Positions 13,016-51,400 of a stretch of 64,000 bases of DNA are shown here, in pieces. Within the stretch, counting starts at the first letter, position 1; each line of letters starts with the position of its first letter. A program made the position numbers and the translations under genes. This DNA is from Convolutriloba macropyga (lineage: Eukaryota), in contig NC_134479.1 in assembly GCF_964194025.1 (NCBI RefSeq), positions 38,874,001 through 38,938,000 on the forward strand, given 5' to 3'. The notes under the pieces were generated by a model. That model saw only the letters and a program-made list of their open reading frames with translations, was not told the DNA's origin and made no database searches.

Positions 13016-14329
13016 ACCAATCTTCGTTACAAAAAAGCTCTCTAAACAAGGGCAATGAAATGATTAATGGACAAAAGTTTTGTGTTTGACCCATATGTTT
13101 GCGTATTTGTTAGAATACAATCAGAGAACAACGAATCTCGAAAAAAAAAATAAATGAAGCATACACCAGTACATCCGCTAATTTGAACACCACTTCAGCA
13201 AACGTCAGGTTTCGAAAAGCTGCAGAAATGTCGAAATGGTGGGTTTTTTAACAAAAGCCTTGTGTTCTTTGAAAAAATATATTCATACGGAAGCTGCAAT
13301 ATCCGCGGAAAACTTTTTTTTAACTAAAATCATTAATCTCTGAACATTTAAAGTCAGGAGTGCTACTATATCTACTACTACTAATTTGAAGATATCTGAA
13401 AAAATTCTCGGTCCTAAGACCTCGCTCTAAAATGTGCAAATGAATCAATCGTATTGATGGAAACCAAAAACAATTTTTTTTGGTCCTGAGAGTCGATTTT
13501 TCGCACGCGTCAATCGTAATACTGGTTAGCCTAATTTTTGCGACAAACTTATTGAATAGGTAGCTTCATTAGTAACAAGCAATCTTTTCAGATCCTGGAC
13601 GAAACTGGACTAGAAATCCACTGCGGCAGACAAATACATCGTGCTATCTCTGGACCATCTCTCTCAAACCAATTTCGATAACCTGATACACATACCATTT
13701 TTATGATTCGAAGGAATTAACCCATGTGAAGAAATAGTTACCTGGCATGACATCATAGGAATTCAATCAGTGAACACAAGAGTAGCAAATTTACGAAAAC
13801 TACACACAGTTAGCTTAAACAAAACATCAAAATCATTAAAAGTTGAACAGAATGCGATATTATGTTGTTTCCCAGAAAGCTACCTAGATGTATCATTTGA
13901 AGTCAGCAGGATTTCTGTTTATGGAAAGTCAATTTATGGAAAGTTATATCCTATAGAAAAGATGAACAGGCTTCCAAAATCACAATCGCCTGAGAAACTA
14001 GTGACAACCAACAAGGCACGAAAGACGAAAAGAAACCGAGACAATTAGAATATGGAGACAGAAAGACAAAAAGAAGACATTATATACAATTTTTCAGCAA
14101 AAGTTTTGTTTGTTTATACCGTGTTCCGTTCTTTTTGTGCGCTGTAGCAGAGATGAGAGTGTTTTCTCACTCGTGGTGCTCTACAAAGTAGTTCAGTGAG
14201 CAGAATCTCCTTTGAATTTTGTACCATTCATTTTTATGTTTCCTTATATCAATTTTGCTGTCTGCTTGTTCGCGGAGATTCGAGTAGGTTCTTTGTCGGG
14301 CAAAATTATGGCAGCCGCTAATCCCCAAA

Positions 14330-18515: not shown

Positions 18516-18555
<40 letters not shown>

Positions 18556-21500: not shown

Positions 21501-24500
21501 AAATGCCTTGGTGTACGGCCTATCGGCGTTGGCCATGTGCTATCAAGAATTATAGGGCGAAGCATTTTGAAGTGCTTTAAAGCAGGTTACATGTATCTTT
21601 GTGAAAATGTATAGTTGTGCTTAGGAGACGAAAGTGGCAGAAAGTTTTAATTATTGCATTCTACATGAGAAAGTCCAAACAGGGAAACCACCATATGATG
21701 CTTAAAAAGCTTTCAACAGTCTGAACACCAGACTTGCCCATAAAAATATATAAATAAACTAAGAGCTTCTCTGTAGGTAGTTCTCTTCATGTACTCACAA
21801 AAAGCCTTCTAATTTTTTTAGTAGGTAATGACATTAAAACCCTCAAAAAGCAGCACTCAGTTTGGCCAGCTTGCTATGGCCATCTGATGAACAAGATTTT
21901 CCTCTAAATGGATGACCCAAGAGTCCTGAAAAAAATACAAAGACTATAGGAGATACAAATAGCCAAAATATTTGCTGATATTTTTTTAAAGGAAAGTAGG
22001 TGATTTTGGTAAAGATTTTAAAGAAAAAGATTTAAAATGCCACCACATGCTGAAAACAAAACACAAAATCTGATAAATAATTTTCTAAATGCGACTTCGA
22101 ACTATTACAGGGCTAAGAGGTGAAAAGCTTGGGAATAGGAACCACTAATTCTTGTTTTCAGTTTCAACATTTTGCTGCACTCTTTCAAAAAGTTATCATC
22201 AAATGGCTCAAAAAAGTGATTGTGAGCTGAAATTTTTAACAGGAACCACTTCTAACTCTCCTAATTTGTCGGAAAAGACATAAAAGTTTATTAGCAGCAA
22301 AATCTTGCCAGCAATCCTGGTTCTTCCAAAATACAACAAAACCACCGAAACCTACTCTTATATCTCGCACAAGAGGGTGTACTTAAAATCGTGCTGATAT
22401 CTGATAGGAGTTCTGAATAACAGAGATTTATGCGAAATGCCGTCCAGTTGAGCAATAATGAAGCAAAAAAAGAATTTGAACAATTACACATACCTAATAT
22501 CATTAGACGAGCAACAAAACGTTCTGGAATTCTAGGAGCAAAGCAGATTTAAATCAAAGGCAACCAATATAGCTCAGAGCTACATGCAATTGATTTTTCA
22601 TGGGAAAAAAGCATCATGCTGGCTGCATGCATTACCACTGAAGAAATAAATTTTCGATCTCTCAATATTTGAGAGAAGAAATTTTGTTTAGGTGTTGTTG
22701 TTGTTGTTGTTTCTGTTGTTGTTTAGGGCTTTTCGTCACAGGTTCATAGTCCCAGTGTCACATTTTAAAATATTGTCCACCTATTTCGTCAGATATAACG
22801 ATCACAGAGGAGTTGCCATGCGCAGAGGTTCTTTTCGGAGTAATTTTTCTTGATGAAACGCCACATTATTGCTATTATTCTTTTTTCAGTCTTGCTTTTA
22901 TCTCAAATTTGTCCAATCTATTCACAAGTTGACAATTGTTGCAAACAAACTCTCTTCGAGCTCTTTCAGTACGTTTTTCATCGAGCATAAAAATGTCAAT
23001 TTTCTTCTTTTTTAATGCATAGTTTCCGGCAGCCCGAATCCTCTTTCATCATCTTTGAGAGAAGCAATGGTTTGTTTAGTTGCAGAAACATTGGCAGTAG
23101 AAGATAACTGAGATCTATGAGTCCAGTGATCCAATTGACAATACTCTTCTTGAAAATTTCAAGTTGTTTCAGCTCAGTTCTTGATGCCCTCATGCAAACA
23201 AAGCCACACAACAACACTCAAAAAACCTGTCACCTGCATCGTAGGAGTTTGATCCTCGTTTGTACTCCCATAGCAACTTGTCTGCAAAGTAAGTAGAGCA
23301 CTTTGTTCGCTCTCACTAATCTTTCTTCGACGGGCGCCTTTCAAGTAACATTACTCCACACATCTATCACTAGTTCTTTCACTGTCGCTGAGTTTTGAAG
23401 TTGCAGATCCATTGATTTGATTGATTTGTCTTTCCCCTGAACGTAACCTTTGTTCGTTTTTCCATGGCATGATCAGTTTATTTCGTTTCCAAACGCTTTT
23501 CGATATAGTGTTCCCAATTGGAAAGATTTTTGAATACCAGACACATAATTCTAACTTGCAATTTATCTAAGGCTTTACTCTAATGCCAATCATTTTTGTG
23601 ACTCATGAGTTTATGCAAATATTGAAAATGATTTTCAGGTTTAGCAAGGTGAAATTTCTGCAAGTCAAAGGACAACAAGTAGCGCTGCGCTTGACATAAG
23701 AGCAAACCGACTATGAAAAAATAGAGAAATCTTCAACCCGTATGCAAAAAAGCTGCAAACATCTACACTGAGTTTTAAAAATATCACGATCACATAAAAA
23801 ACAGTGAAACATTATCAATAGATCTGCGTCGTAGAACAAACTATCTTCAACCGAAAGCAATCCCCCGATAACAGAACAAGACACCAATACGAGAATCGTA
23901 AAAAATCCTAACACGCTACCTAGTTAATTCTGTTTGTTTACAACCACTGATATCGAAGACGTGCCAAGAGAATATTCGAGGTGATAGTGTACAGGAAAAG
24001 TGTTTTCGCCAGAAAAAGAAAGAAAGAAGATGCTGGCACTTAATATCACTGATACTTTGAATAGAATACTCTTGAAAATAATTCGTTATTTCATGCCGTG
24101 TCTGACCTTCCCACGAAACAATGAAACAACAATTGTTCACTGGTTAAAAAAGAATGAGCAGACGATTTGATCTTTGGGTCTTCGGTTAAATTAATGAAGT
24201 GTTCAATGAAGCAAAAACGATGCAAACTATCAAAATTAGCTGAAAGAACAGCAAACTGATATCTATCTTTCTTTGAGCCCTATAACCCATGCAGTCTCAT
24301 CGCCCTTGATAAATGCCTTGGTGTACGGCCTATCGGCGTTGGCCATGTGCTATCAAGAATTATAGGGCGAAGCATTATGAAGTGCCTTAAAGCAGATTAC
24401 ATGTATCTTGATGAAAATGTATAATTATGCTTATGAGAAGAAGGCGGCAGAGTGTTTTAATTATTGCATTCTACATGAGAAAGGGAAACCACCATATGAT

Positions 24501-25507
24501 GCTTAAAAAACTTTCAACAGTCTGAACACCAGACTTGCATAAACATATATAAAAAATTAAGAGCTTCTCTGTAGGTAGTTCTCTTCATGTACTCACAAAA
24601 AGCCTTCTAATTTTTTTAGTAGATAATGACATTAAAACCCTCAGAAAGCAGCACTCAGTCTGGCCAGCTTGCTATGGCCATCTGGGGAACAAGTTTTTTT
24701 CCCCGTCCTCTAAATGGATGACCCAAGAGTCCTGAAAAAAATACACAGACTATAGGAGATACAAATAGCCAAAAAAATTGCTGATATTTTTTTAAAGGAA
24801 AGTAGGTGATTTTGGTAAAGATTTTAAAAAAATGATTTAAAATGCCACCACATGCTGAAAACAAAACACAAAATCTCATGAATAATTTTCTAATTGCGAC
24901 TTCGAACTTTTACAGGGCTAATAGGTGAAAAGCTTGGCAATAGGAACCACTAATTCTTGTTTACAGTTTCATCAATTTGCTGCACTCTTTCAAAAAATTA
25001 TCATCAAATGGCTCAAAAAAGTGATTGTGAGCTGACATTTTTAACAAGAACCACTTCTAACTCTCTTAATTTGTCGGAAAAGACATAAAGTTTATTAGCA
25101 GCAAAATCTTGCCAGCAATCCTGGTTCTTCCAAAATACAACAAAAACACCGAAACCTACTCTTATATCACGCACAAGAGGGTATAATTAAAATCGTGCTG
25201 ATATCTGATAGGAGTTCTGAATAACGGAGATTTATGCGAAATGCCGTCCAGTTTGTCGATAATAAAGCAAAAAAAGAATTTGAACAATTACACATACCTA
25301 ATATCATAAGACGAGCAACAAAACGTTCTGGAATTCTAGGAGCAAAACAGATTTAAATCAAAGGCAACCAAGATAGCTCAGAGCTACATGCAATTGATTT
25401 TTCATGGAAAAAAAGCATCATGCTGGTTGCATGCATTACCACTGACGAAGTACATTTTCGATCTCTCATTATTTGAGAGATGAAATTTTGTTTAGGTGTT
25501 GTTGTTC

Positions 25508-32450: not shown

Positions 32451-32738
32451 TCGAACTGAATGACTGTTAAATCTGATTTGGGAACTTAAAAATTTCCCTT
32501 GGTTATTCCCTAAATCTTGTTTCGATTCAATAGTTGAAATTCTTTGAAGCAGGATGTTATAAACGTTCGGTATGCCTCGTCAAATGTAAATTATCGTTTG
32601 ATGACTGAGATTTTATCTCCTCATTATGAATTCTTTTTTAGATAAATGAAAAAATGAAAAGCTGGGTTGATAATGTTGATGTTTTTTTCCAGATTCAAAA
32701 ATAAAAATGTAAATTGGAATTTAAACTGGAGAACAAAG

Positions 32739-34533
32739 ATGGCCGCCAGTACCTCTACATTTCGGCTGAGGCAAGACTATCTCCGTCTCATGAGAGATCC
32801 AGTACCGTTTATCACGGCTGCGCCTCTTCCTACAAATATTTTAGAATGGTAATAACGTTGATCTTTCGTAAATATTGGCGTCTAAGAGCTCTTTGAAATT
32901 GAACTGTGACTATGATGCTTGTAAATATTACAGGCACTATGTTGTGGAGGGTCCTTCGGACAGCGTATATGCAGGTACGGAAGTCCAAATTTGTTTAAGG
33001 CTTGAACAGTATAATCATATGCGAATGGTGATGTAGAAATAACGAATTTTCTAATGATAGATCTAAACCAAGCCGCCTCTGATGAATTAGGCTACATCTG
33101 GAAATTATGAATTAGGCTACATCTGGAAATTAAAATGAAGCGTTTTTTTTAAATCCGTGAAATGTAAATTCAAAATTTTTGTAACCATAAAATTTTGGTT
33201 AAACTTTTACATTTAACAATCACTTTAAAGGCATATGAAAAGTTTAGGCCTTAAAATACCAGCAAACATAATTTCTAAAACCTTGTACTTGTCAATCTAT
33301 TGGAACACGTTCATGTAATTTTATAATTTGTTACGGCTAAGGCAACAATATGAAAATTTGATTGGTTGCAAGCGTTATCACCTAACTGCACGTGTTTGTA
33401 GCGATATCAGTTACGTCATAATTCAACGTGTTTGCAGTGGTTGGTCCGCCTCAGAATAGATCCAATCTGGAATGCGTCTGTTTTCAGGAGGATTCTATCA
33501 TGGGAAATTGATATTTCCTAAAGAGTACCCATTCAAGCCTCCTTCTATTATGATGTTAACGCCAAACGGCAGATTCAAGACGAACACCAGATTGTGTTTA
33601 TCTATCAGTGATTTCCACCCGGACACTTGGAACCCAGCGTGGTGTGTATCTACCATTCTGACAGGACTTCTAAGTTTCATGCTTGAGACATCGCCTACTT
33701 TAGGGAGCATTGAAACATCTGTGCAAACGGTATGAACGAGCTGTGGCTTTCAGAAGAGTGCATTGATACTTTTCTGCATATTTGGATATAAAATAATTGA
33801 ATCTGTCAGGCTATTACGGCTAATTCGCGAGAATCTAATGATGCTTCATTTATTATTTTTGACAGAAAATTCGATGTTGACTTTGGAATATATAACTTTG
33901 GGGTCAAATATATAAATTTGAATCATTATTTTTTTCTCAATGTTTTGTCTATTTTTTAGAAACGACAGCTTGCGTTGCAGAGTATAGAACACAACATCAA
34001 AGATTCAATATTCCAAGAAGTGTTTCCGGAGCTCTTCAAGGTAAATCAGAATTATTGATAGTTGGCCTTCTAATTGACTGAACAGTGAGCGCCCACTAAC
34101 CAACATCACAGCAGCGTATACAAATTTAACCGCAAAAACGTATTGTATTTTAAACGTACAGCAATATGCGGGGCTCTAGGAGCCGCGTCAAAACATTGAA
34201 TTACCACTCACTAATTAGGTGTCAAGCCTTCCCTCCCACTACAACACTATTTTTTCCCTTGAAGGAAACATTTGCGTGTCATTTTAGAAACTGCAGGACC
34301 TAACGAAACAACGGGAAGCAGAAATGAGTCGAGCCATCACATCGCAAAATATGACCTCACCTAATTCGACTAATAGCAGGTCGAGCGACGTCAACAGGCG
34401 TAATGGAACTGACTATATGAATGATGGTAGTTGGACTGGAACCTTGATGAATTTGGGTGTTATTTTTGGGTTTGCGGCTTTCTCTTTTGTCGTTAAATAT
34501 ATTTGGAAATTGGTCGTCAATGAGCAATTATAA
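32739..34533 (+). CDS. UBE2J2: Ubiquitin-conjugating enzyme E2 J2 (Ubc6-like, tail-anchored), 5 exons
   Basis: Exons 32739-32848, 32934-32974, 33488-33729, 33960-34040, 34288-34533, all GT-AG with consistent phase. RLRQDYLRL..DPVP, NILEWHYV, GGFYHGKLIFPKEYPFKPP, TPNGRF..NTRLCLSISDFHPDTWNPAW and a C-terminal TM segment. Confidence 0.95.
33082..33131. repeat. Perfect 25-bp tandem duplication in UBE2J2 intron 2
   Basis: atgaattaggctacatctggaaatt x2. Confidence 0.95.
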
Positions 34534-35316
34534 TGAGTCGATAGCACAGAAGGCAGAAAAAAGTCGCGTTTAGAATTTGATAGATAGGCATTGCATAATT
34601 TCAAGGATTTAAAAAAACCTTGTTCCCATTGTTTTCTGATTATGAAAAATCGACACTGTTTGGTATTCGCATGAAACTTTGATGAAAATCAGTGATGATT
34701 CTCAACATTCGTGCTTTCTGAATAGCAAATGTTGAAATGGTTTATTGGTTTCAATTTAAGTTTTCTGAAATATTTGATCTCATAAAATATAGATTTAAAA
34801 ATAGTCCACCAGAATGGGAATAATTCACATTTCTGCTTTCTAACTATCGCTCGATGCCGTAGAAACTTTGTTAGATGTGCAATTCTAGATGAATATTGCT
34901 TGTCGATTTGATTAATATTCTTCCCTGTACATCCCACGCTGTTTGATGTATGAATTAGAAATAAGAATATGCGCAGTTAAAATGTTATGAATGTTTATAT
35001 TTAACCAAATTCACTCAAGTTTAGAGACGATTTTTTCAAGAATCCTTCAAAGTCAAAGCAGAAACTGGATACAGAAGCGGAGATTTTAATGTGTGTTGTT
35101 GAAACAGCATTACTCCTCGAGGTTGTAAGCAATACATATCTCACATCTTCAAATGAAGGGGGTTGGATAGCTCTAAGCAGGCTGTAATTTTAGCGGAATA
35201 AAGCAATGATGCTTTTTTGTGCCAAGATCGCGATAGGATCCTATAACATGTGCCTTTACCGCATTGTTTCAAATGATTGCTGTTTTTCAGGTCTCAATGT
35301 GTTAACTATTTTGAAA

Positions 35317-36699
35317 ATGGAGCCGGAATCTCGCAGTGCAAGTGCGATCAGTAAAGTTGCAGATGCAAAACCCGAACCAGAAAGTTCTGGAATTGTACCC
35401 GTATTAGGACAAGCAAATTATGATCCGGAAACAGCTGTTGAATCTGCGAAAATGAAAGAAGTTAGAATCCAGGGTGAACCTCAAGCGTACATTGATAGTT
35501 ATGACGAAATGTACCCCAATTGGCAGCAAAACGAAGAACCAATACAAGTTCTAGACATTCCGTTAGTTATGAAAAGAACCCTGTTAGCAAATAGCAAAGC
35601 CAAGGAAGAGAAAATGACAGCTGAAGAGAAAGCTGATTGGCTAACTCAAGGAATGAGCCATTTACGTTTAGACCGCGAAAACATCGCTGTAATAGAAAAC
35701 CTCGAATGTTTCAGTGCAAAACTAACTCATCTTTATTTGCAACATAACAGAATTGAAGTTATATCTGGTCTAACTTGTTTGGAGAAGCTGAAGTTCTTGT
35801 GCCTATCTCACAATAAAATCAAAGTTTTGGATACAGAAGAGTTACCCAAAGATATATTGGTTATTTATATGGACGGCAACCCTTGTGCAGATAATTCAGA
35901 CTACCCTATGAATTTAATTTCAGCTTTGCCCAAACTGAAGTCAGTCGATTTTCAAAGTGTAACAGAAGCTCAAAAACGAAGAGCTCGTGCATTTCTTGAT
36001 CCAAACTTACAGGAACCGGGAGATGATTCAGAAAATTCTTCCTCTGAAAATGAAGAGAGTAGTGGCGACGAATCAGGTCCAGAAGATATAAGTTCGATTC
36101 TTGTGAAAGGATTCGACAAACTGGATCCTGCTAAACAGCAAATGCTGAATGAATTGGATATTGATATAGCTCAGGTTGAGAACATAGAGGAACTGTTGAC
36201 CACTGACCAGTTGCAAATTTGGCGGACATCGTATGAACAAGTTAAGATATTAAGTTCAAGTGAAGAGGGTGAAACGTCGAGTGGTGAAGAAAACGCTCAA
36301 CCAAACCCAGAAAATCAGCCATCGTCAAGTTCAGAACCAATCGCTAACACTGAAATCAAAGTTGTCAAGAAAGGTGGCAAAAAGAAACGAAAAACTAAGA
36401 AAAAGTCAGATGGCTTAAAAATCAAAACTGAGAAAGAGAAAAAGAATTTGAAAAAATTGGGAATCAATCCAGCTCATTTCAGAGATCTGACTGTTAAGCT
36501 TTTGGGACGGTCAAGAGCTCGGCAACTTGAAGATGTTCAAAAACACAACAAGAAACAAAGCAAACTGGACACTTTTCGAGAGCAGGAAAGCGAGAGATTA
36601 TCTAACAGGAAGTTACCCGTTTCTGACAGGGTTGTGTATGACAGAACAAATAAAGTAACGGTCGAGGTTTTGTCTGAAAGAGGAGGTCAATCGCATTAA
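35317..36699 (+). CDS. LRRC46: Leucine-rich repeat protein, LRRC46-like (single coding exon)
   Basis: HLRLDRENIAVIENLE, LTHLYLQHNRI, LKFLCLSHNKI..LDTEELPKDILVIYMDGNPC..Y..LISALPKLKSVD (SDS22-type LRRs + LRRcap, as in LRRC46), then an acidic linker. ATG 35317 follows the acceptor at 35290. Confidence 0.75.
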   Translation: MEPESRSASAISKVADAKPEPESSGIVPVLGQANYDPETAVESAKMKEVRIQGEPQAYIDSYDEMYPNWQQNEEPIQVLDIPLVMKRTLLANSKAKEEKMTAEEKADWLTQGMSHLRLDRENIAVIENLECFSAKLTHLYLQHNRIEVISGLTCLEKLKFLCLSHNKIKVLDTEELPKDILVIYMDGNPCADNSDYPMNLISALPKLKSVDFQSVTEAQKRRARAFLDPNLQEPGDDSENSSSENEESSGDESGPEDISSILVKGFDKLDPAKQQMLNELDIDIAQVENIEELLTTDQLQIWRTSYEQVKILSSSEEGETSSGEENAQPNPENQPSSSSEPIANTEIKVVKKGGKKKRKTKKKSDGLKIKTEKEKKNLKKLGINPAHFRDLTVKLLGRSRARQLEDVQKHNKKQSKLDTFREQESERLSNRKLPVSDRVVYDRTNKVTVEVLSERGGQSH

Positions 36700-37420
36700 A
36701 TTGATCACAGATTTCATGAGATCAACTTGACTAGTTTCTGATTTTTCTATTTAACAAAATTTACTAAATGCTAGATGTACAGGATTAGTGTTTTATTGTA
36801 TAAGTATGTACATACTTGTAAAAAGTTCGATTAAAGAAAAAAAAAGTCCGGTTATTTTGTTTTCCTACTAAATTGTTTTTCGGTTTTTATAACAATTACA
36901 AATGTATGCGATGTTACATTAGATGTGGCTTCTTCCTTGTGACACCGGATTGCATTGAGTGTCTTCTTGAATTGGATGAAATGATGTCAGATCAAATTAG
37001 CCACTGTGACAGATTACCCGGTTCAAAATATCCCAGAATTTTCATGCGATTTCAAATTATCAGACAATAACCGCCATTTTTCTTCGCTTGCTAAAAAAGA
37101 TCTTTCTAAACTCGTGCTGTGATAAAATCAGCAGCATAAGTGGTCGATGAAGTCTTGCGCAATGACGGAAAACTGATTTTGCGGTTAGAGGTCGAAGTTC
37201 AGAATCGCTTTTTAGTTACTCTCGAGCGAATTTTGAATTAATTATTGTAAACTGGTGTATTTTTTAATGCAAAAGTTTTGCTTGGATGTTTACTGCGCTT
37301 TTCGTCCAGAACTTTCTTTCAATATCATTGCTCGAGTAACTTTTCAGGCACGACTTCTTGGTTTTTGTGTGATCTAAATTGATAAATGATAATACATTGG
37401 AAGATGATACGATGCGAATG

Positions 37421-37465
37421 CCTGATGCCCGAGTGGTTAATGCGCTAGGGTTCGAACCCCTCTCT
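37421..37465 (+). mobile_element. tRNA-derived (SINE-head-like) fragment
   Basis: A-box-like tgcccgagtggttaa (37426-37440) and B-box ggttcgaaccc (37449-37459) with the anticodon region missing. Confidence 0.5.
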
Positions 37466-38170
37466 AATTGGAAATTTTTTGCACACAAAAATTTATCTAT
37501 GCTACAGCCACCTCTGAATCAAATTGGCCCGCCTGTCGTTTGAGAGCAACTTTTCCAAAGTTAGTCGGTTTTTGTTCTCGTTATTGTTGCTATACAAAGA
37601 GTGGAGAACTCTGTAATCTTATCGGCAGAACGAAGGCGTTGGTTATGCACGGTAACAGTCTGGTCATTGTCATTCAAAAGCAATATTTGAAGCATCTAGA
37701 CGAATGGTAAACAAAAGATACATTACAATGACATTCGTCGAAATGTTTTTTATTGCGAATTATCATGTTTTTCATTTGGAACGTTTAAATTGTCAATTTT
37801 AGATATATTTTTTAAGTGTGTGCTTTTTCAAACTCTAACGAGAAGAAATGGATATTAAGATATGCTTGTTATCGCCATCAAGAATTTTTGATAATTCGGG
37901 AGGGCGATGTCAATCGGGTCGTTGTGTTTTTATTCAACTCTTGTTGGGATTACAACAGTTGCATAAGTAACACCCCACTGGAGTTGATTAGACTGTCTTT
38001 TTCTGGTTGATCTTCACTCACCATTCTTCAGATACCAACAGTGGCTTGAAAAAAATGACGGAAAAAGATGGTCTAGTCTCATTGGTGGGTTACGTAAATG
38101 TTGTTATCGGAAGGAGAGATTCTAGAACAGACTAGAAACGACTAGAACAGATTCTGTTAAATTTTTTGCT

Positions 38171-38304
38171 GGATCTTCTTCAGTTTGCAAACCCCCCCCC
38201 CCCCGCTCCAGTATGTTATGCAACCCCCAGTTACAGGGCACGTGTCATTGCATAGTCAATCACATGGAACGTGCATCTGAGGGGGAACAAACGGAAAGGA
38301 TTCC
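38171..38304. mobile_element. MITE (GGATC... terminal inverted repeats), copy 1
   Basis: Homologous to 55417-55565; flanked by ttttgct on both sides. Confidence 0.7.
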
Positions 38305-38613
38305 TTTTGCTAAAGGTTGTAAATTAAGAGTATAGAATCGTACTTAACCGACAATTTCTTACGTTTCAGTAAAGAAAACGAAATACAGTTTTTCTGAGAA
38401 CCTGTCTTTCAGATATATTTGTGTTGTGCCGTTACCGGCCGTGTTTGATTGACTTTATTGCGAAACGTGACTTATGAGTGATTTCTACTGATGCTGCCTT
38501 CGCGGAACGGTGCTCAAAAAGTGGCTGAATTTTGATTGCATGTCCGCTACAATTCTACTGCTGAAATTTTACCCAGAATTAATTTGTTTTCACCGAGAAA
38601 ATATCGAAACTTG

Positions 38614-39210
38614 ATGGCAGCTGGAATTCGAAAGAATGCACAAAAACGGCGAAAACGAAGGTCCAAGTCAGTATCGTTTTCAGACTTCAAGGAATCTTCA
38701 TCCAAAAGTTGTGAACAAAAGCAATTGCACACTGAAAGGAAAATGACCAAATGCTATCTTTGTAACGTCGACATTGAAGTTAGTACAAGTGTGTCGCAAA
38801 TCATACGTCATGAAAAAGGCAAACTTCATCAGTCCAAATCGGGAGTAAATGTTCACGAGACATTGTACAAGTGTTATTGTTGTAATAAATTGTTTTCGAA
38901 AACAAACGATTTGATGCGTCATCTCGAATTTGAACCTGATGAAATACTGGATCAAGGCACTTTGCTCTCAAGAAATGACGGTAAAAAGAATCCTAATCGA
39001 ACAAACGATCGCTTGTTGCCCAAAAGTGTTATAGTGGTCAGTGATCGTGAGCCAAAACATAGTAGAATTGATAAAAGGCAACGAAATGAAAGCATATGGT
39101 CAAAGAAGAGTGGTAAAAGTTTTTCGAACAATCAATATTGGAAGCAAGAGCGGTTTGTCCATCCAAATCTGAAAGGTGTGACAAAAAGAAATAGGAGATT
39201 TGGGCACTAA
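38614..39210 (+). CDS. Basic protein with two C2H2-type zinc fingers, the first U1/matrin-like; single exon
   Basis: CYLC-x15-HEKGKLH and CYCCNKLFSKTNDLMRHL, an NLS-like KRRKRR, first in-frame ATG at 38614, AATAAA at ~39327. Confidence 0.6.
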   Translation: MAAGIRKNAQKRRKRRSKSVSFSDFKESSSKSCEQKQLHTERKMTKCYLCNVDIEVSTSVSQIIRHEKGKLHQSKSGVNVHETLYKCYCCNKLFSKTNDLMRHLEFEPDEILDQGTLLSRNDGKKNPNRTNDRLLPKSVIVVSDREPKHSRIDKRQRNESIWSKKSGKSFSNNQYWKQERFVHPNLKGVTKRNRRFGH

Positions 39211-40752
39211 ATTAATTCCCGTTGTTGAAGAGAGCTGAACTGTTAGGATGTCAAGATTTTTGTTTGTTTTGTAATTTTGATGATGCTATTTTTTGTGATG
39301 CTAATCAACACATTTAAATCAAGAACAATAAACGAGAGCATGCTTACGCTCATTAGTGCCTTTTTTTAGTTTTTTAGTGCCTTTTTTGTTGAGTGTGTTA
39401 AAACAGCGAAAACTAAGAAAAGGTATTCAAGATTGATCCAGGGGTGTATTTTCTATAACCTTGATGGCTTGATGTCATCTTTTGTCAATTTTATTGTCTA
39501 TTTTTGTTTGGGTTAATAAGTAGTTAAATAATTTAACCAATTTAATATATTATTCATTTTCAAGTTGGAAGTAGTGTTAATGTTCAAACCCTCCGGGCAG
39601 GCATGTGCGTCGTTGCTGGCATCGCCTATTCCTGCCTTTGGCCTTCATGTTCCACAAGTTGAGCTCACAATGCACTTAGTATGCTCGTTTTTGATGTTAA
39701 AAACGTTCATGAAGCGATATCATTTGCCATATTCGTCGTATACGAGCTAAAATGTTTTTTACTTGCTCTGCAGTCAACTGTGTGTTAATAGAAGCTTTTG
39801 TTCATCAATGACAATGCTCTGCCCAGAAAATGAACCAGATAATTGTGAATGATTTGCTTTCTGAGAGTTTCATCAAAAGAAACTGCTTCTAATTGCTTTA
39901 GGATAATTGGACGAAAACTGTGATAGCAAATAATATTTTCTGACAAGGTTGAGAAACATGTGGCACAGGGTGCTACACGCAGACTGGCACGAGCCGTCTT
40001 GTTATTATTAATTGCTCTTGAACGAAGTGCATAGCAATTATTGTAAACGTGTGTGTGTCTTTTTTTATGCAAAATTTTCAACAATTTTCGAGTGACTTTT
40101 ACGCCCTTGACTTTTTGCGTTTCGCGTGATCTAAAATTCTCTCTCAATCACAATTTCAAGCAGCTGAACTCAATTGGCGGCAATTTAATAGTAAAAGTCA
40201 AATGAAAAGTGCGCCGAAACTGGTGCCATTTTTTACTTTAAATCTTACTAGTGGTATATGTTAACCTCTAATGTGGTTATTTGAAGCCCACTATTCAACT
40301 TCTTAGTCCCATTTAGGCCCCCCCCCCCCCCCGACTGAAGCAGGCTGCGATTGATTAGAGCTCCCACTAGTCGTTTGAGAGCAATTCTTCCGACGTTTAG
40401 TCGGTTATGTTATGAATTTTTCCTTTCAATTAAGTATCACTGTTCTGCACGTCGTTATTGTCCATACAAGAGTGGCAAAGCCAGAACCCATTTGTCAGCA
40501 TAGAAAGCCTCAAAAGAACGTAATTGTCGATCAACAACTTTTTCAATTAGTCTTTCCGTTATTGATTGAAGTAAATCTCTTGCCTTGCTCGATTGGTCTG
40601 AAAGATATATCCTAAAGAGATCAAACTGACTATACTACTTAGCAAATCCTCAGTTGTCCTCATTCAGTCCCCTAAAGTCTTGAAGAAATTGAGAATGAAT
40701 TTTAGTTTCCTCTAATTAAATTGGTCTTCATTTCAGAAAGTATTTGATTTGT

Positions 40753-42204
40753 ATGTTGCGGCAACGTCTGGTTGCTTCCTTGGTCGCTCACAGTTGCGCT
40801 TTGAGGTCACAATTACAATCCTCGAGTCAAAGGCCAAATGTCAGCCAGAATCTACCTGTGACGAGTGTTCAAAAACGAAATGCGAGTCGCTTGGAACCTT
40901 CGTATCATTGCGATTTCGCAATTATCGGTGGCGGGGCCATCGGATCAAGTATCGCCTATCACATAAAAACTCACAAGGCCAACAAAGATTTTGATGTAAT
41001 TGTTTTTGACCGTGATTTGAATTATTCAAGATCGTCGACAGTGCTGAGCGTTGGCTCTATCAGACAACAATTTTCAATACCAGAAAATATTCAGCTTTCT
41101 AAAGATAGCTTTCAGTTTTTGGAAAATGCGAAGAGCAATTTAACAGTTTTCAGCGAAGATCCTGTTGATATTAGCTTTAAAAAATCTGGGTATTTATTTC
41201 TTGCAACTAAAAGTGGAATGGACCGGCTACACCAAAACAATGCAACACAAATTGCGTCAGGAGCAAAGTTAAAACTTTATTCATCAGATTCTCTGAAAGA
41301 AGTGTATCCGTGGATGAACGTTGATGACATTGCGGGAGGCTCCTTGGGAATAGAAAATGAGGGATGGTTTGATCCGTGGAGTTTTCTAAGCGCTCTGAGA
41401 AAGAAAAATGAAAGTATGGGAGTGCAATATGTTCAAGCAAATATTGTTAGTTTTCCTGATATCATCGATAGAGGCGAACAGCTAAATGTCGTTAGAGCCG
41501 CTATCGGCGACCCTGCTTTCCCTTCTGCGTCGCCCCTTTCAGTTATCTACGCTGGCGAGTACGTGAACGCTTGTGGTGCCTGGGCGGGACAATTAGGGCG
41601 TTTGATTGGAATCGGTGGGAAGTCCGAAGATGGTTCTTGTTACGACTTCTTGACAGATGGGTGGCGAATGGATCCCAGAATGCAATTCCCGATTCCCATA
41701 ATGCCGAGAAAACGGTATGTGTACGTTTTTCACTGTCCTAACGGACCCGGAATAAAGTGCCCGATGGTTGTGGACCCGAGCGGGGTTTACTTCCGAAGTG
41801 AAGGTCCGGCCGGGTACTATATCTGCGGAAAATGTCCATCGCCAGAACAAGAGCCAGATACCCATAACTTGGAAGTTGATTACGATTTTTTTGACGAGGA
41901 AATCTGGCCTATTTTAGCTGCCAGAGTTCCAGCATTTGAGAGCTTGAAAGTAACACATGCGTGGGCTGGATTCTACGATTACAATTTTATGGATAGAAAT
42001 GGGATTATAGGTTATCACCCTGTTTTTGATAATTACCTGATTGCTGCTGGATTCAGTGGTCACGGAATTCAAATGTCGCCTGCTGTTGGAAGAGCTGCCG
42101 CTGAACTTCTTTTGAAAGATAAATTTGAGACCTTGGATATGACACGATTTGGCTTTGATAGATTTCTTAGTAATCAGTTGATATATGAGCAGAACGTTGT
42201 CTAA
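40753..42204 (+). CDS. FOXRED1: FAD-dependent oxidoreductase domain-containing protein 1 (complex I assembly factor), single coding exon
   Basis: Arg/Ser-rich presequence, IIGGGAIGSSIAY, STVLSVGSIRQQFSIPENIQLS, GYLFLA, ENEGWFDPW, PRKRYVYVFHCP, WAGFYDYN..D.NGIIGYHP, GFSGHGIQMSPAVG. Confidence 0.95.
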   Translation: MLRQRLVASLVAHSCALRSQLQSSSQRPNVSQNLPVTSVQKRNASRLEPSYHCDFAIIGGGAIGSSIAYHIKTHKANKDFDVIVFDRDLNYSRSSTVLSVGSIRQQFSIPENIQLSKDSFQFLENAKSNLTVFSEDPVDISFKKSGYLFLATKSGMDRLHQNNATQIASGAKLKLYSSDSLKEVYPWMNVDDIAGGSLGIENEGWFDPWSFLSALRKKNESMGVQYVQANIVSFPDIIDRGEQLNVVRAAIGDPAFPSASPLSVIYAGEYVNACGAWAGQLGRLIGIGGKSEDGSCYDFLTDGWRMDPRMQFPIPIMPRKRYVYVFHCPNGPGIKCPMVVDPSGVYFRSEGPAGYYICGKCPSPEQEPDTHNLEVDYDFFDEEIWPILAARVPAFESLKVTHAWAGFYDYNFMDRNGIIGYHPVFDNYLIAAGFSGHGIQMSPAVGRAAAELLLKDKFETLDMTRFGFDRFLSNQLIYEQNVV

Positions 42205-42909
42205 TACCCAAGGAGGAGTCCAAAAAACTTCTTTCAATCTATTTTTCAACCAGAAGTTTGAATGATAATTGTATGTGGGAAAAGATTTGAATTGATGGTA
42301 AATAAAACCAAACATTTGAATGTTGCAATAGCAGTAATAGACAGTGCAATAAACATCAAAAAATGTTCCATTAATGGCATTATCTATGTTCGGGATTAAT
42401 GGGCAATGATTTTCAGGTCATCATACCGCCATCAACTTGTTTTTTCCAAGTTTTAGAATTGAAATAATTTAGTGCATTTTTTGAATAGTTTGACTTATAT
42501 TGATAATTTACCTGACATGAGTATGTCAAAGCTCAGTGAGAAGATGAGTTTGAATCATAGCATTTTGATCAAATTTTAGGTCCCTATTTTTTCGGAAAAT
42601 GACTGGACAGGAGCATCCGTTAGTTCCAGTGTGTTAAGAATGTAAATTTATGTCAGCGTCGGCAAGATAGTGTCAAAAATTTAAGCTGATGAAATCCATT
42701 ATCTTCAGCGCTCCGAGAACATATTTAATGTCACAGAAAGGACGATTGTTGTTCTAATTGATTTGAACCACATGCAAGTTTTGAAATTGAATTGAGATAT
42801 GTTAGTTTGAGTTTGAGATTTCAATGTAATTTTTTGAAAGTGAATACGGACCATAATCCCGTGAGTTCTATATAATTTGAAAATTCTGTTACCATTTCAG
42901 GTCCATGTA

Positions 42910-45900
42910 ATGAGACAGCAGTCTAGTGGTAATGCTATGACATTCACTGCCGGTGGACAAGGAGATGGTGGGGAATCGGATTCTTCTTCCTCTTACGAAG
43001 ACGGATCCAGAGATTCAGACGACGATGGTGTTATTTATGATGACGATGATGATGACGCTGAGGGTTCGGGTTGTGACCACTCAAATTGAACGTAATTAAC
43101 CATAGAGTTCTAGGCTGTCATTTTTTAAATTTTTTTTCAAAATCATACAAAGGTACTCAAGGGGATACACTTAACGGAGGGAAAACTTGAAAAGATATTT
43201 TCTTCAGCTGAAAATCTCTATCCTATGCTATCCATTTTATACAAGAATATTTTCCACTTAGACGTTTTTTTTTTCCTTTTGATTCCTAACTTAATGGCCT
43301 AAATTGATTATAGTGCACATATCTATGGCTGGCATGAAAATGAACTCTGCCACAAAGGGAGAGGGGAGGGTTAGAAACAATTATATTAAACTGCTTACTG
43401 ATGTAAATTGGTTCGTCCAAAAATAATTTACAAATCTTGCAGAAGTATGTAAATCAGAGCACTTATAGATCAAATGATGAAACCAAATTAAATTCTAGGA
43501 TGCGAAAAACTTGTTCGAGTGAAATTGCTAGAATGGGAAACTTTGAATAAACATATGAATATTCTGTCACAAGCCCCTTGTTAACCATATACAGCAGATG
43601 ACAGTGATTCAGAAATTGACGACGATGACGAGGATTCTGCCAATGAGGATGACGTCATAGTGCCTAATATGGACCAGCAGGTCAATGTGGAGTTTGAAGC
43701 ATTCCCGCCATCTGACACTGATTTCCAAGTAGAGCATGTTTTTGTATTAAAGAACACTTCCTTATTCGTATAAACCTGAAGAAAGAAATTGCGACGTTGA
43801 TGGCTGAGAGTGTTTGATCGTTGAGAGTAAATCACAATCATCAGTGGTCGTTTTGATGAATGAGGAGCTTTTAAAAATTTTCTTGTTATTATTAACAGCG
43901 AGCACTCATTCATAAAGTAGAAAAAAGCTAGCTTTTTGGCGATTTAAACGAATACTGAAGTATTGCCATTGATTCATAACAACTTTTGAGTTGCAGTTAT
44001 TCAAGAATATTTAACAGGGAGAACAAAGTGTTTTCAGATTATTCGTTAATTTGGTACATATTTGGAGGTCTGATGATCCTACTAGCGCATGGTTTGAATT
44101 GGAAGATTGAAAAATTATCAAACTGTTGAGTGCTTTATTGTGTTTAGAGTCTTGTGGCTTTATTGGGAAGGCTCTTCTACAAAAGTGAACCCCAAATAGA
44201 TCTGGCTCAGCTAGCGAACTGGATCATAGGTACGTGCTTTGGCGTTCAATCATAAATTTGCGATAAATAGTAAATTATTAATCGCTCTCAAGCGATGTAG
44301 CAATTATATTAGTCCTGCGGGTCTTTTTTAATGCCATTTTTCGTTGTAACAATTTTTCGTCTTTGAGCCTTACGGCTTACCAGTCTCTAAGTAGTTGACT
44401 CATCATAACTATTTAAGAAACTTAATTTCATTTGAAGGAGGGTTCTTCGAGTTTGACCCCCTCTCACGTAGCCCTCCCCCACAACTTCACATATGCCCCT
44501 CTCCTCTACCTCATTCCGCCTATAACCCCGCACGCTCGCCCCCACGCGCGCTCAACACCCTCCCCCTTGCTCACCCATCACACTCAATCAATCTCAAGCT
44601 ATCGTACCGAAGCCGCAAGTATTGCTACTGACGAATCCAAACGCGTGCCATAGTTTGAGAGCAATTTGCCCGCCGTTAGTCAGTTATGGTTTTTATGATA
44701 GATTCTAATAGCAAAGACGACGACTCGTTTTGGTTGTGTCCGTTGCATAGGAAGTGATAACATTGTCAGTTAGAAAAAGTAAAGTGGTTTAACAGATATT
44801 TTGTTGGCAGTCGAATGAAGAAAACAAGTTGTGAGGCTGTTGTTTTCTGAAGATTAAACTTACTCTTAATTTTTCGCAATTTAACATAGACTGCTACTGG
44901 TTTGTATAAACTTTTTACACGCTGCAAATTCTTTGCTACAGATGAGGAAAAAACAATGAACAAAAATACTGAAACTGTGTTATTTTTTTTGAAAAAATAT
45001 TAATTCATATCCTTCAAACAAAATTTTTTTGACGATCACGACGAAAAATGTGGATTAGTTGAAAGCTGGATAGAGTTCCTGTAAGTCTTATTTTGAAAAA
45101 GAATGGTTTGGTATCTGTTTTCCATCAACTTTTTCAAGAAACTGGCAGTGAAAAAGTTCTTTAAATAACTAAGACGAAGGGAGACAAAATTTGTGAACGG
45201 TTTCACGAAAATTAGTTTAACTAATTTCTCAAAAATTAATAGCTTCAAACTTGAAAAGTGCGCACCAAAAGGAAATAAGACCGCATGACAGAAAAGGAAT
45301 AAGACCCGCATGGCAGAAAAGACAAAGCAACTGAGCAATGATTGCCAAACAAGAAAAATACACTTTAACCGAAACAATCCTTGATCCGCTGAGTTGAACA
45401 CAGGCTCAAGAACTAGAAGTTTCCGAAAAATTTAAATTCTCGAAGCTTTTGAGCAAACGCTTAATTTCTTTCTTAATTTGTGAAGTTTAACAAGTTTCTT
45501 TTGCTTTGACAGCGGCCAACCTAATCTTATAGAAGTCCAACTGGTGTTTGAAATAGACGGTGATCGTTTAAAATTGAATTGTTCAATCCTTTAAAATTGA
45601 CGGTGATCGTTCAATCCTTTAAAATTGAATTGAAACGGGAGAAAAAATGTTTATAAAATCGAATTACAAAAATTGAAAAATATAGTTTCAGTTCTAATGT
45701 CATCAAAATCAATTAGACAAACTGGACACCTAGTGAAACTGTTGTTGATCCCCGTAGGAAATTACAGTCAAATAATACAGAAAAGTAAAATGTGACATTT
45801 TTGTTACCATTCTATCAAAAATTTTCTCTGTTTTATGAGATCAATAACTGCGTAAGATCAAACTATAACAAAAACTGCTCTTTCTCAATCCCCGTACTAA

Positions 45901-48146
45901 AATGATGATGGGGAGGTTTTTTATACCTTTTATGATCTCAATAGTGCCTGAGGAACTTATAGGCTTTACAGAATAAATATTTTTTAGTGGTTTTTTAAGA
46001 CTTTGTATTTCACTTCTGATCTCAGATAATCCGGCAGTGTGTTCCAGAACTTGGCACCGACTTGAGACAAATCTCTAACTAAAAACTTGTCAAGTAGCGA
46101 GAACTGTTGTTATTACTGACTTGTTTTGAGCAGACAGTTTTGAACTCCATCCTCTGTTTAACGGGCAACCAGTGCATGCTTTCCAAAAGACTCCTCTACT
46201 TTCCTTGGAAGGATCGAATATTATCCGAGTAGTAGCATTCATGCGTGCCAATTGAACCAAGTATCGAAGAGCGTTGTCAATTGACAGAATGTTGCTTTTT
46301 AAAAACACAGGAAAAACTTGATTGTAAATTTTGAGTGTGCTATGATAATAGGTCACAATTATGTGGGCAGTGTGCTGAAGACGAACAGTGCTGAAGTAGA
46401 TGATGAAGATGATGAATCAGAGAGTGATGACGTCATGGATGAAGATGACACTGTTTATGGAATCACTACTGTAGTCAATCTAAGACAGACTCCGTCTGGT
46501 TAGAGTTGTAATTTCGTTGCAAATAATTTGTCATCGATTCTGTTACGGCCCCGCCTTGCGGATGTTTAAATGGGTCTTTCCCATTATAGCCCCAGCTAGT
46601 TTTTTTTCTCGCTACGAAGTAACGGTCACGTTTTATAAGGCCACAAAGTTTGTCTGGGGGATAATGAACGACACAAGTGCGAGAGAATAGTTCCATAACT
46701 TATTGATTTACTAATGCCTTACAGATCGAAATGCTTGCTTTTTTCTTTGAAAACTGAAATACGCTCATGCAAGCTTTAAAAGACTTGCAATGCCAGATTT
46801 CAGAATTCTCAATACCAAATTTTCCCATATACAGTAGCAGATTTCAAACTTGCGAGCAATGTTACGTGACTCCGGCTTAAGTCACATGAGAATTCTGGCT
46901 TGCATATTGAGCCGAGCCGTGACTCCGCTTGATTTCACTCAGAAGTTCTCGGGTTAATCGGAAACCGCGTAAAGTTTGAGATGTTGATTTTTTAAAGTCG
47001 CGAAATCTTACTTAAAACAGACAACGCGCAAGTTTACAAATACCGAAATTTAATGGAAGTCAACTTCTGGCTGTGTATATCAGAACTTCTGGCATTGCAC
47101 ACTCACGCCATTTTAAAACTTGGATGTGCGTGTTTTGATATGTTTGTGTTTTGTGTAGGCAAAGAGGAGGGTTTTAAGCAGTCCATAATCAACTACATTA
47201 ACCACAAGTGCAACAGTCCTGAAATACAAACAGTCCTCAACAACAGTTCAAAAACAGTCGGCCTTTTAATCACAGAACGCTTTGTCAATATTCCGCCCCT
47301 ATTGGCGCCTCCCATGCTCAAGTGCCTCAGCAAAGAGATCGAATCTGCCAAACAGAAAAAGATGCCCTATAATTTTTCACACCTAATTCTTGTGTCTAAG
47401 AGTTATGACGTATCAAGTCAGGGTCCAAACACCACAGATGGGCTGCCACCTTGTTTGGAGTTCATAAATCCAGAAGATGAAATTTTCCAGGGATATTTTT
47501 GCAAATTTTGTCTATTTTTTGTTTCTTAGTCTGAGGTGCTTTTCGATTTGTCTAGGTCTTCTAAGGTGAACTGTAATTCTTTTTAGCTGTGAATCTGTGA
47601 ACTAAGTTGGACGGCAATATTGGAGTCTTTTGGAGTTATAATTGGGGCCCAGTCTTTTGAAAGGATTTGAATTGTATTGTGGCCCCACCATTGACTAAAA
47701 AGTCATTGTGATCTATGTTTTTAAAGAAAAAATGGTTTGATTTTTTGTGAAACTGTTTTTTGCGAATTTCAAGAGCAATAAACTACGAATAGTTTTCGTA
47801 TTCTGTTTCCTAGGGTTGACGTGTTTTGGAGTATCCTTTTAAACATAATTTGTCTCCAGGTCATAATAAACTTATTTTATTCGCATCATCTGTTCACGCA
47901 AAAACTCTGAAAATATCCCTGTTTATTATACTGCAGCAATATGCTCAATGTGTAGCAAGTTTCCCAGTTCCAGAAGCCGAAGACTTGGTCGGAGGTTCGT
48001 GGGGTCCCAAGGACAAAGCGATGCCCCAGTACCGAACTGTGTGTTTACTGCCCATGGACAAATTCAAAGCTGCCGTTACTCAAATTTCACAGACTTTTAC
48101 TGTTGAAAATATGATGTCACTTTTAAATGCTCAAAATAGTCAGTAA
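42910..48146 (+). CDS. BCCIP: BCCIP/Bcp1 homologue, 6 exons
   Basis: Exons 42910-43063, 43595(or 43598)-43728, 44148-44229, 46352-46498, 47159-47490, 47937-48146. Acidic N-terminus, VNVEFEAF..SDTDF, NYVGSVLK, VYGITTVVNL, VGLLITERFVNIPP.LAPPM, FINPEDEIF, GGSW, RTVCLLP. The last donor is non-canonical (see findings). Confidence 0.88.
45960..46310 (-). mobile_element. Possible LINE 3' fragment in BCCIP intron 3
   Basis: Minus strand reads SQVGAKFWNTLPDYL (~46068-46022), resembling the GxxxWNxLP C-terminal motif of L2/CR1 ORF2. Confidence 0.45.
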
Positions 48147-48455
48147 ATATTAATAAATTTATTCGCAAATAGAAGTATGTGTTTTTGTGTGTTTAAGAAG
48201 AACAGCTTTCTGATTGTTTTTAGAATATTCGAGCTTTCATGTCGATTTTTCATTTAAACAGGGAACAGATTTCTGATAAAATTTATTCTTAGTTTTTGAA
48301 GCTGGAATTTTTTGTTTGTTTGAGAGTGTATTGTTAGTGTAAACGTTCTTCCAGATAAGATGCGATCATTTTTATTAAAATTACGTAAACTGAACTGTCA
48401 CGTAATTGGGATGGTCTTTTGAAACTCAAATACTCTTTCAGATTAATATGTAGTT

Positions 48456-51400
48456 ATGGACGAAACCCCCAAGTACACAGACTTAGACGCAGAACCTTCT
48501 AGAAAGTACACGAATCTTGACTCGTTCCAAGGACCCGCGGCTGCCCCTTCCGCGGCACCCTCATTAGCCCCGACAAACCCAGCTGGCTACCCAAGCATGG
48601 ATCCCAACAGTCCTCAGGCAGGCTCAGCTTATAATGGCTACTATCAGCAGTCGCCAGGGGGTTCCAATGGGTACTATAACGGGATGATGCCTGGACAACC
48701 GCAGCCAAGGTTCGGAACAGGTGTTTTTATGGAACTTTTTTTAGCTGTCTTTTATTGTAACGATCATTCGCATAGAATCTGCATATCCATGAAAAGTTTC
48801 TTCATCCCCATAGTATGTGACTTTGGATTTGATAATCTTTCAATAAAATATAAATTAGTTAGTTGTTAAAATCAGATAAAGCTTAGTGTATAATTATATG
48901 GAGATTATGCACATTTCCTTCGTGGTTTTTGTGAAATGTTAATTTTTGTATGTAAAATTGATGGAATCTGGGGAAAGAGTTTTGATAATAATGTAATATT
49001 TGGTTGTCTAAGCTGTGATTGGGTTTCTGTTCAAGGTATCCAATGGGTCCGCAGGCAGCATACGGATACCCTGCACCTTCTGTTGATCAGCAAAATCCTG
49101 CCGGTTACGTGCAACAACCCCCACATCCTCAGCAGCCCAGTTACCCAATGACGTCACAACAGGGACCCGTGAATCCTCAGTACTTGGCACAGCTTCACAG
49201 TGAGATAGAATACTACAAAGCAGAAGTTGCTAGGATGTATGTGATGCCGCCCTCCACAGATTTAGCGGCAAAGATCCGTGATTTCCAGACTCGGATATCG
49301 TATCTCGAGGGTAAAAAGGAATACCTTGCGATGGGTTCCCAGCCTGGCCAGGTTGCCCCTGGTTATCCTCAATCACCAGCACGTTACCCGAATCCTTCAG
49401 ATCCAAATTACATGCGAATGGGTTACCCAAGAACGCCGGTTGGATATCCGAATCGTCCTGCTATGCCACAACAAGTACCACAGACACCTCCAGGTGGGCA
49501 TTACTATCAGAACCCTAATCAACCTGCCGGGTATAATGTATACGATAACAAGCAGCAACCAGGTGGTGCCCAAACTATGGGATATCCTTACTACGCACAA
49601 AACTATCAAATGGATCCCAATCAAGTTCAAGGAACTCCGGGATCTCATAACGGGTACCCTCAAGCTCCCCAGTACCCTGCTCAGCATCCGAGTGCAAGCG
49701 CGGGAGGGTACCAAATGCCGCAACCACAATCAGGATACCAACCTCAAACTCAACACAGTGCAATGAATCAAGCGTCCCAGCAACCTCACACTCCACAGCA
49801 ACAGCAAATAGTCAGACCTCAATCTAGTGTAGCGCTTCCGGTCTCACAGGTTCAGCCCCCACAACCAGTAGTTCAGACTCCAGTTCGACCAGCCTTTAGC
49901 ACTCCGTCATCAGTAGCTCCCAGAGCCTCCCCTGATCAGATCCAAAGTATAAGACCGGCATCTCCAAGAAGCGCGTCGAATAGCAAACTTGAATCGCCAA
50001 AACAACCAGTAGCAAAAAGCAGTGATTTAGATGTTACTCAAGTTAACTCAAGTATTGACGCTGCTCTAGATAATGCGAAACCTATAACTTATTCACCACA
50101 AGCTACATCCTTAGTTTCCAGTTTTGTACAAAGCGCTTTCAAATCAAAAGACGAAAATAGCCCTGATTCGGGTGTAACAGGCGCTACAGCTAGTGTAGCC
50201 ACCTCCGTTCAACATAATGAACAGACGTTGCAGCCTCCCATGCCACCGATTGTTGACAACAAACAAATGGTCAACGTTCATGGGAATTCTAACCCGCTAC
50301 CTCCGATATCGGTATATCAACCTGTAGTTTCTAGTCAACTAAGTTCACCGTCTCCACAACAATCGTCAACAGCTCGAGAACAATTGTCACCTATCGCCAG
50401 GAAAGAGGAGGTTCCAGTACCGCAAGCGCCCAGTTTTGAACCCTGTGAAAGTTTGATTCAGAAGCACGTAACAGCAACCTCAGAAATGCACCCCGCTAGT
50501 GCTGAAAGTCAGTCAAAATTGGGTTTCGAAATGCCATCGACATCCGTAACCTCTCCTAAGCTTCAGCAACAAGAAAGTGCAAGTCCTTCAGGCAGTTCAG
50601 TTGACAATGCTTCGCAACCGAGTGAAAGCGAAGATGAACCAAAAGTGTTCTCAACGTTGACGTCGCATTCCATTACCAGCAAATCCGAGAAAACGGAAAT
50701 GGCGTTACCATCTTTCAGTCAGCAATCTGCAGTACCAACTAGTGGTCCAGCGCATTACGCACCGATGCAAGGACCCCAACCTTATCCTGTCCGCCCTCAT
50801 GCTATTCCGCCGCCAGGTATGTCATCAATTCGTCCAGGGATGCACCCACAGCCCATGCCAGTTCCAGGGCATCATATGCCGGGGCAGTACAGACCCGAAT
50901 ATCCGATGAACCCAGGCCAGAACCCTTACATGCAGCCAATTCCTCCGGGCACTCAACATATGCCGCCGACTACTGGGCAGCCTGGCATGTATCCTCAAAT
51001 GCACTGGGGTATGCCAGGTGGAGCTCCAGCGGGGATGCAACCAATGAATGGCGCACCCGCACCGTTGCCGCAACAGGCACAGTGGCCAGCACAGCATGCA
51101 ACTCCACCGGGATACCCGCCTTTGGCGCCAGCTGGTCCACTGCCGCCACCGCGTCATCAAACACCCTCGCCTCGAGGGGGTAAAAAATCCGCAAACGGTA
51201 AAAACAGTTCTTCAGCCGAAGGCAAACGTGTGAAGAAACGCCGTAAAGACACAGAAAAGGCCATTCCCGATTCGACAACGTCGGAACTCGGAGAACCAGT
51301 TAGCAGTTCTAATGAAATTCTATCGTGCAATGAATTTAACGCCTCTAACGTTGACAGCCCTGCGGAAGAGCCATCGAGTTCTCAATGTGACAGTGCTGTT

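Follow-up and report, generated by a model that had tools for sequence, protein, structure and literature searches.

Spliced leader (SL) trans-splicing and operons are patchily distributed across animals and their origin is debated, and acoels hold a key position among the bilaterians. In nematodes, the intercistronic spacing within operons is roughly 100 nt. In chaetognaths, operons have been recognised with a criterion of <250 bp spacing (PMC12460157). The closest described system is that of the acoel Symsagittifera roscoffensis (Martinez et al. 2022, G3), in which a 32-nt spliced leader is produced from multiple SL RNA genes and 10,433 genes (30.2%) are SL trans-spliced; the word operon is absent from this genome paper and from its preprint (PMC9911081). 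For Convolutriloba macropyga, also a member of Acoela, trans-splicing has not been reported in print; the genome note is silent on splicing and states that poly(A) RNA-seq exists (PMC13650328). Here we analysed a stretch of 64,000 nt from C. macropyga (NCBI RefSeq assembly GCF_964194025.1, contig NC_134479.1, positions 38,874,001 to 38,938,000 of the forward strand), hereafter the window, in which six neighbouring genes each have an acceptor-like AG upstream of the start codon. The deposited record used for comparison of the coding sequences (CDS) was OZ077310.1 (GCA_964194025.3), in which base 38,914,753 corresponds to base 40753 of the window.

The six genes are co-oriented on the + strand in the order UBE2J2, a leucine-rich repeat gene (LRR, LRRC46-like), a zinc-finger open reading frame (ZnF ORF), FOXRED1, BCCIP and CHD. 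Pfam and homology searches identified UQ_con (a tail-anchored UBE2J-type E2), the LRR protein, DAO/FOXRED1, BCCIP and Chromo/SNF2/HTH_CHD6-9 (a CHD6-9-type remodeller), so that five of the six gene identities proposed in an earlier note on this DNA were confirmed and the ZnF ORF was left as a weak member. As read from the letters, the UBE2J2 acceptor is TTCCAG (32687..32692, + strand), 46 nt 5' of the ATG at 32739, with the CDS running to the stop at 34533. The other five, on the same strand, are all TTTCAG: the LRR acceptor (35285..35290) lies 26 nt 5' of the ATG at 35317, which opens a single-exon CDS to 36699; the ZnF acceptor (38407..38412) lies 201 nt 5' of the ORF at 38614-39210; the FOXRED1 acceptor (40731..40736) lies 16 nt 5' of the ATG at 40753, which again opens a single-exon CDS, to 42204; the BCCIP acceptor (42895..42900) lies 9 nt 5' of the ATG at 42910 (CDS 42910-48146, about six exons); and the CHD acceptor (48436..48441) lies 14 nt 5' of the ATG at 48456, with an in-frame TAA between AG and ATG and the gene extending past 59153. 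With the G of the AG taken as the acceptor coordinate (32692, 35290, 38412, 40736, 42900 and 48441), the spacing to the ATG is 9-46 nt for five genes, the ZnF ORF being the exception and the weakest member of the set. The stop-to-AG gaps, in order, measured 757, 1713, 1526, 696 and 295 nt, and all five upstream stops are TAA. These results reproduced the acceptor positions of the earlier note exactly, as well as its gap sizes of about 760, 1710, 1530, 700 and 295 nt.

That the acceptors had been picked by looking near start codons was a caveat of the same note, and it was answered with a background set of 616 + strand ATGs from 32-64 kb of the window. TTTCAG was found at most 27 nt upstream of 1.8% of these ATGs, and TT[TC]CAG at most 50 nt upstream of 5.5%. 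The chance probability was about 1.5e-6 for at least four of the six sites and 5e-7 for five of five, and chance placement was therefore ruled out (P about 1e-6). Internal splice sites were then remapped in part, from conserved exon blocks. TTTCAG made up about 1/12 of these internal acceptors, the rest being TTTTAG, TTACAG, TTCTAG, GTGTAG and similar, in agreement with the 2 of 19 counted previously, whereas it is found at 5/6 of the 5' sites (Fisher p = 0.004).

The analysis documents the motifs, shows that they are conserved and non-randomly placed, and shows that the gene order is conserved as well. What we infer, with a probability of roughly 0.65, is that the six AGs are 3' splice acceptors to which an acoel spliced leader is added in trans; SL trans-splicing itself is taken from the literature on the sister genus. 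A leader of about 32 nt would come from SL RNA genes elsewhere in the genome, an outron ending at TTTCAG would be attacked by the SL RNA donor, and the mature mRNA would consist of the leader and 9-46 nt of gene-specific 5' untranslated region (5'UTR) before the AUG. TTTCAG would then represent the local acceptor motif in its strong form, and we propose that this strictness makes up for the lack of a paired donor that would help to mark the site.

The hexamer could also be read as an initiator-like core promoter element (TCA+1G), with transcription starting at the A and giving very short 5'UTRs. TCAG indeed resembles the initiator motifs of insects and vertebrates, and a TATATAA lies 30 nt 5' of the BCCIP site. 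However, the TATA-like block is 10 nt nearer in S. roscoffensis, so its spacing is not kept, and there is no TATA at the other sites. In addition, the three T before CAG are as invariant as CAG itself, the motif equals the local intron acceptor in its strong form, and the sister species demonstrably trans-splices (PMC9911081), which together make a promoter element highly improbable.

To place these acceptors in a wider context, the window was compared with the S. roscoffensis locus (L002), with L008, L009 and the metagenome scaffold L010, and also with L005 and L007. The S. roscoffensis locus, with its orthologous sites at 19.18-19.20 Mb of OY783236.1, is collinear with the window, with UBE2J2, LRR, FOXRED1, BCCIP and CHD on one strand and 82% identity for FOXRED1. 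TTTCAG was found 9-46 nt 5' of the ATG in all five S. roscoffensis orthologues (46 nt for UBE2J2, 17 nt for LRR and 19 nt for FOXRED1). The BCCIP acceptor with its 9-nt 5'UTR is the same in the two species at 8/9 positions, and the CHD acceptor with its short 5'UTR in 14/15 columns, the rest of the spacer being unalignable in both cases. In five acoel sources the CHD acceptor lies 14-18 nt 5' of the ATG, as TTTCAG in four and CTTCAG in one, and when the BCCIP>CHD spacers of all five are aligned, conservation begins at the acceptor. Gene order is kept in part: BCCIP and CHD are adjacent and co-oriented in 5/5 sources and UBE2J2>LRR adjacency is kept in 4/4 species; ZnF genes come after LRR in the window, in L005 and in L007, three species in all, and not in S. 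roscoffensis; and only C. macropyga and S. roscoffensis have FOXRED1 between the two sub-clusters, an SMC gene preceding BCCIP elsewhere.

The short 5'UTRs of BCCIP and CHD also hold tiny upstream open reading frames (uORFs). Before CHD (48442-48455), each of the five acoel sources has an ATG..TAG uORF that ends 2-3 nt 5' of the main ATG. The BCCIP uORF (42901-42909) reads ATGTAATG / ATGTTATGA and overlaps the main ATG in both species. Conservation of these short 5'UTRs is above that of coding sequence.

We next looked for the leader itself. Scanned with at most 3 mismatches, the published S. roscoffensis leader gave no match in the window. A relaxed scan returned one leader-like 32-mer (13529..13560, + strand), which matches the published leader at 27/32 positions and has GTAGCT after base 31; by hand arithmetic, the chance of a 27/32 leader match is roughly 1e-6. 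No LINE (long interspersed nuclear element) or other protein domain was found downstream of it, and no leader copies were found in ten comparison loci. This sequence could have arisen by retro-copying of a leader or by decay of an SL RNA gene. The proposal of the earlier note that this lineage trans-splices was supported, indirectly, by the conserved acceptors, by a TTTCAG consensus unlike that of the internal sites and by the leader-like copy; its novelty was lost, as trans-splicing had already been published for the sister genus (PMC9911081).

Several observations weigh against trans-splicing at these six sites or weaken single members of the set. The leader-like copy at 13529-13560 (27/32, with its GT) has neither a canonical Sm site nor a significant fold (z = +1.2), and an Rfam search of the whole window returned no family and no SL RNA match. 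Leader use at the six AGs is predicted here from genomic DNA alone. Four sequencing runs of one sample, analysed over 38200-44199, proved to be DNA: depth was flat whether in exons, introns or spacers, the BCCIP intron gave no joint, and there were half-depth bubbles of allelic single-nucleotide polymorphisms. The protein clusters of the window's genes contained no transcript-derived members, all being genome-derived. Since about 30% of S. roscoffensis genes are trans-spliced, the prior for any single gene is modest. For UBE2J2, the deposited CDS begins 66 nt 5' of the ATG at 32739, with another in-frame ATG at 32673. The ZnF ORF (198 aa) is missing from the deposited annotation, no ZnF counterpart was found in the orthologous S. 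roscoffensis interval, and a second acceptor-like site, TTTTACCCAG, lies 40 nt 5' of the ZnF ATG. Finally, an in-frame stop is absent from 4/6 of the short 5'UTRs when the letters are read by eye, so an upstream cis-spliced exon is compatible with the sequence.

This last point leads to ordinary cis-splicing, in which each AG would close a 5'UTR intron with a non-coding first exon farther upstream. In variants of this explanation, BCCIP would be nested on the same strand in intron 1 of CHD, which would also account for the kept BCCIP>CHD adjacency, or several genes would share one leader exon. Cis-spliced 5'UTR introns are known that have their acceptors near the ATG. For 70% of S. roscoffensis genes, trans-splicing is not reported (PMC9911081). 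However, an intron of this kind would be required in every robust gene of two species, closed each time by a strong hexamer that is rare at internal introns. No donor-like or exon-like conserved block was found in the five-way BCCIP>CHD alignment or in two pairwise alignments, so the acceptors stand upstream of the ATG with no conserved donor block before them, although the absence of a paired donor is not provable from DNA. Moreover, a promoter, a first exon and an intron would hardly fit, together with a 3' end, into the stop-to-acceptor distances of 150-203 nt found in S. roscoffensis and L010. We therefore consider cis-splicing unlikely, and trans-splicing of a leader to these sites is the explanation that we prefer.

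Trans-splice acceptors of this kind would also bear on the deposited gene models. For LRR, FOXRED1, BCCIP and CHD, the deposited CDS starts are the ATGs given above. The deposited UBE2J2 CDS runs on across the AG and its polypyrimidine tract (32673-32738), and the sequence 5' of 32736 has no conservation relative to S. roscoffensis. In S. roscoffensis, the deposited model (OY783236.1, L002 2363-6245) joins UBE2J2 and LRR in one 699-aa product with UQ_con and LRR domains. The fusion probably arose in annotation, from two trans-spliced genes that lie close together on one strand. A junction from the obvious donor, which might have used the LRR acceptor, did not fit the lengths. Unrecognised trans-splice sites would thus distort gene models in both species, as a fused UBE2J2-LRR in S. 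roscoffensis and as a CDS start 5' of the acceptor in C. macropyga. As to the ZnF ORF, its similarity to the ZnF genes found after LRR in two further acoels is weak (E = 0.007). In another acoel assembly (L005 11584-17209, L006 3730-9470), LRR is followed by three tandem same-strand zinc-finger paralogues of zf-C2H2_jaz / zf-met type, and TTTCAG near the ATG (28 nt) was seen in the first copy only.

To what extent the six genes might be transcribed together was considered separately. An operon reading, as raised in the earlier note, extends trans-splicing at these acceptors and does not exclude it: at least two genes, at least BCCIP>CHD and perhaps FOXRED1>BCCIP>CHD, would lie on one precursor transcribed from a promoter at the cluster head. 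Coupled 3' end formation and SL trans-splicing would then divide this precursor into monocistronic mRNAs. We hold this to be possible but doubtful. It is favoured by the position of all the genes on one strand, in the same order in S. roscoffensis, by the adjacency of UBE2J2>LRR in four species and by the deposited S. roscoffensis fusion of these two genes into 699 aa. The BCCIP>CHD pair, adjacent and co-oriented in 5/5 acoel sources, has a stop-to-AG distance of 150-527 nt (295 nt in the window, 170 in S. roscoffensis, 150 in L010, 527 in L008 and about 485 in L009), and in S. roscoffensis the FOXRED1>BCCIP and BCCIP>CHD gaps are only about 203 and about 170 nt. In L010, an AATAAA at +72 leaves about 55-80 nt to the acceptor, which is too short for an independent promoter.

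On the other side, the gaps in the window (295-1713 nt) exceed both the nematode spacing of about 100 nt and the limit of <250 bp applied to chaetognaths (PMC12460157); by the latter, 0 pairs qualify in the window, and the pairs of S. roscoffensis (about 203 and 170 nt) and L010 (150 nt) do. A heterozygous high-copy insertion is tolerated in the ZnF>FOXRED1 gap, and in two further acoels FOXRED1 is unlinked to BCCIP, which is preceded there by an SMC gene. The head gene UBE2J2 has an acceptor as well, so that neither an operon nor a downstream position can be read from an acceptor alone. Adjacency may also be conserved as ordinary microsynteny, and no report of acoel operons was found in the searchable literature.

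The six genes are probably not one operon; most of the gaps are long enough for a 3' end, a separate promoter and an outron. Within the window, only BCCIP>CHD may be a credible dicistron, given its operon-like geometry and deep conservation. Its spacer (48147..48435, + strand) is the sole operon-like gap of the window and has an AATAAA 6 nt after the BCCIP stop; the two genes would be co-transcribed and then resolved by polyadenylation and trans-splicing. The broader proposition, that acoels have SL-resolved operons, with a BCCIP>CHD dicistron in at least five lineages and trans acceptors following a stricter TTTCAG code, can be put forward only tentatively, and we think it rather less probable than its opposite. 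If true, it would be the first report of operons in Xenacoelomorpha, which are early-branching bilaterians, within the searchable literature.

Mobile and repeated sequences were also observed in the window. The insertion in the ZnF>FOXRED1 gap resembles a miniature inverted-repeat transposable element (MITE). This MITE-like element (40005-40411, about 406 nt) has imperfect terminal inverted repeats, AATTGCTCTTGAACGA / TCGTTTGAGAGCAATT, lies 325 nt 5' of the FOXRED1 acceptor and has a word depth of about 10,000x single-copy; a half-depth contig joint skips it, indicating that the insertion is heterozygous. On the - strand, a LINE (5285-9526) contains ORF1, an endonuclease (Exo_endo_phos) and a reverse transcriptase (RVT_1), and no leader-like sequence was seen 5' of it. 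From about 14490 to 25500, repeat blocks are 83-85% identical (for example 14489-15766 versus 21401-22671 and 24211-25475) and sets of ORFs recur every ~4.16 kb, which makes this a tandemly duplicated repeat region; two assembly gaps are nearby.

A trans-splicing signature at conserved sites in a second acoel family adds little beyond the one published species. What would be new is proof of acoel operons, and proof that trans acceptors have a stricter motif than cis acceptors. Compared with C. elegans and its SL1/SL2 leaders, the window has in common a UUUUCAG-type acceptor a few to tens of nt 5' of the AUG, same-strand clusters of unrelated housekeeping genes, and a first cluster gene that would also be trans-spliced. 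It differs in that the nematode combines intercistronic distances of ~100 nt with a dedicated SL2, whereas the gaps here span 295-1713 nt, with 150-203 nt in relatives, and the sister species S. roscoffensis is reported to have only one predominant leader. Moreover, a single consensus describes nematode acceptors of both the cis and the trans kind; in the window, by contrast, the 5' sites are enriched in TTTCAG. The single-SL operons of chaetognaths, tunicates and flatworms, for example Paraspadella gotoi (PMC12460157), are alike in that monocistronic genes and genes in operons would share the same leader; operons in such systems are called from short same-strand spacing together with SL evidence, whereas the candidate pair of the window is judged from genomic DNA. 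In S. roscoffensis (PMC9911081), the leader was shown on RNA genome-wide, whereas its use here is predicted from DNA, and that paper lists no sites for these genes. It is nevertheless the nearest counterpart, belonging to the same acoel clade, with a collinear locus and TTTCAG 5' of the ATG in five orthologues.

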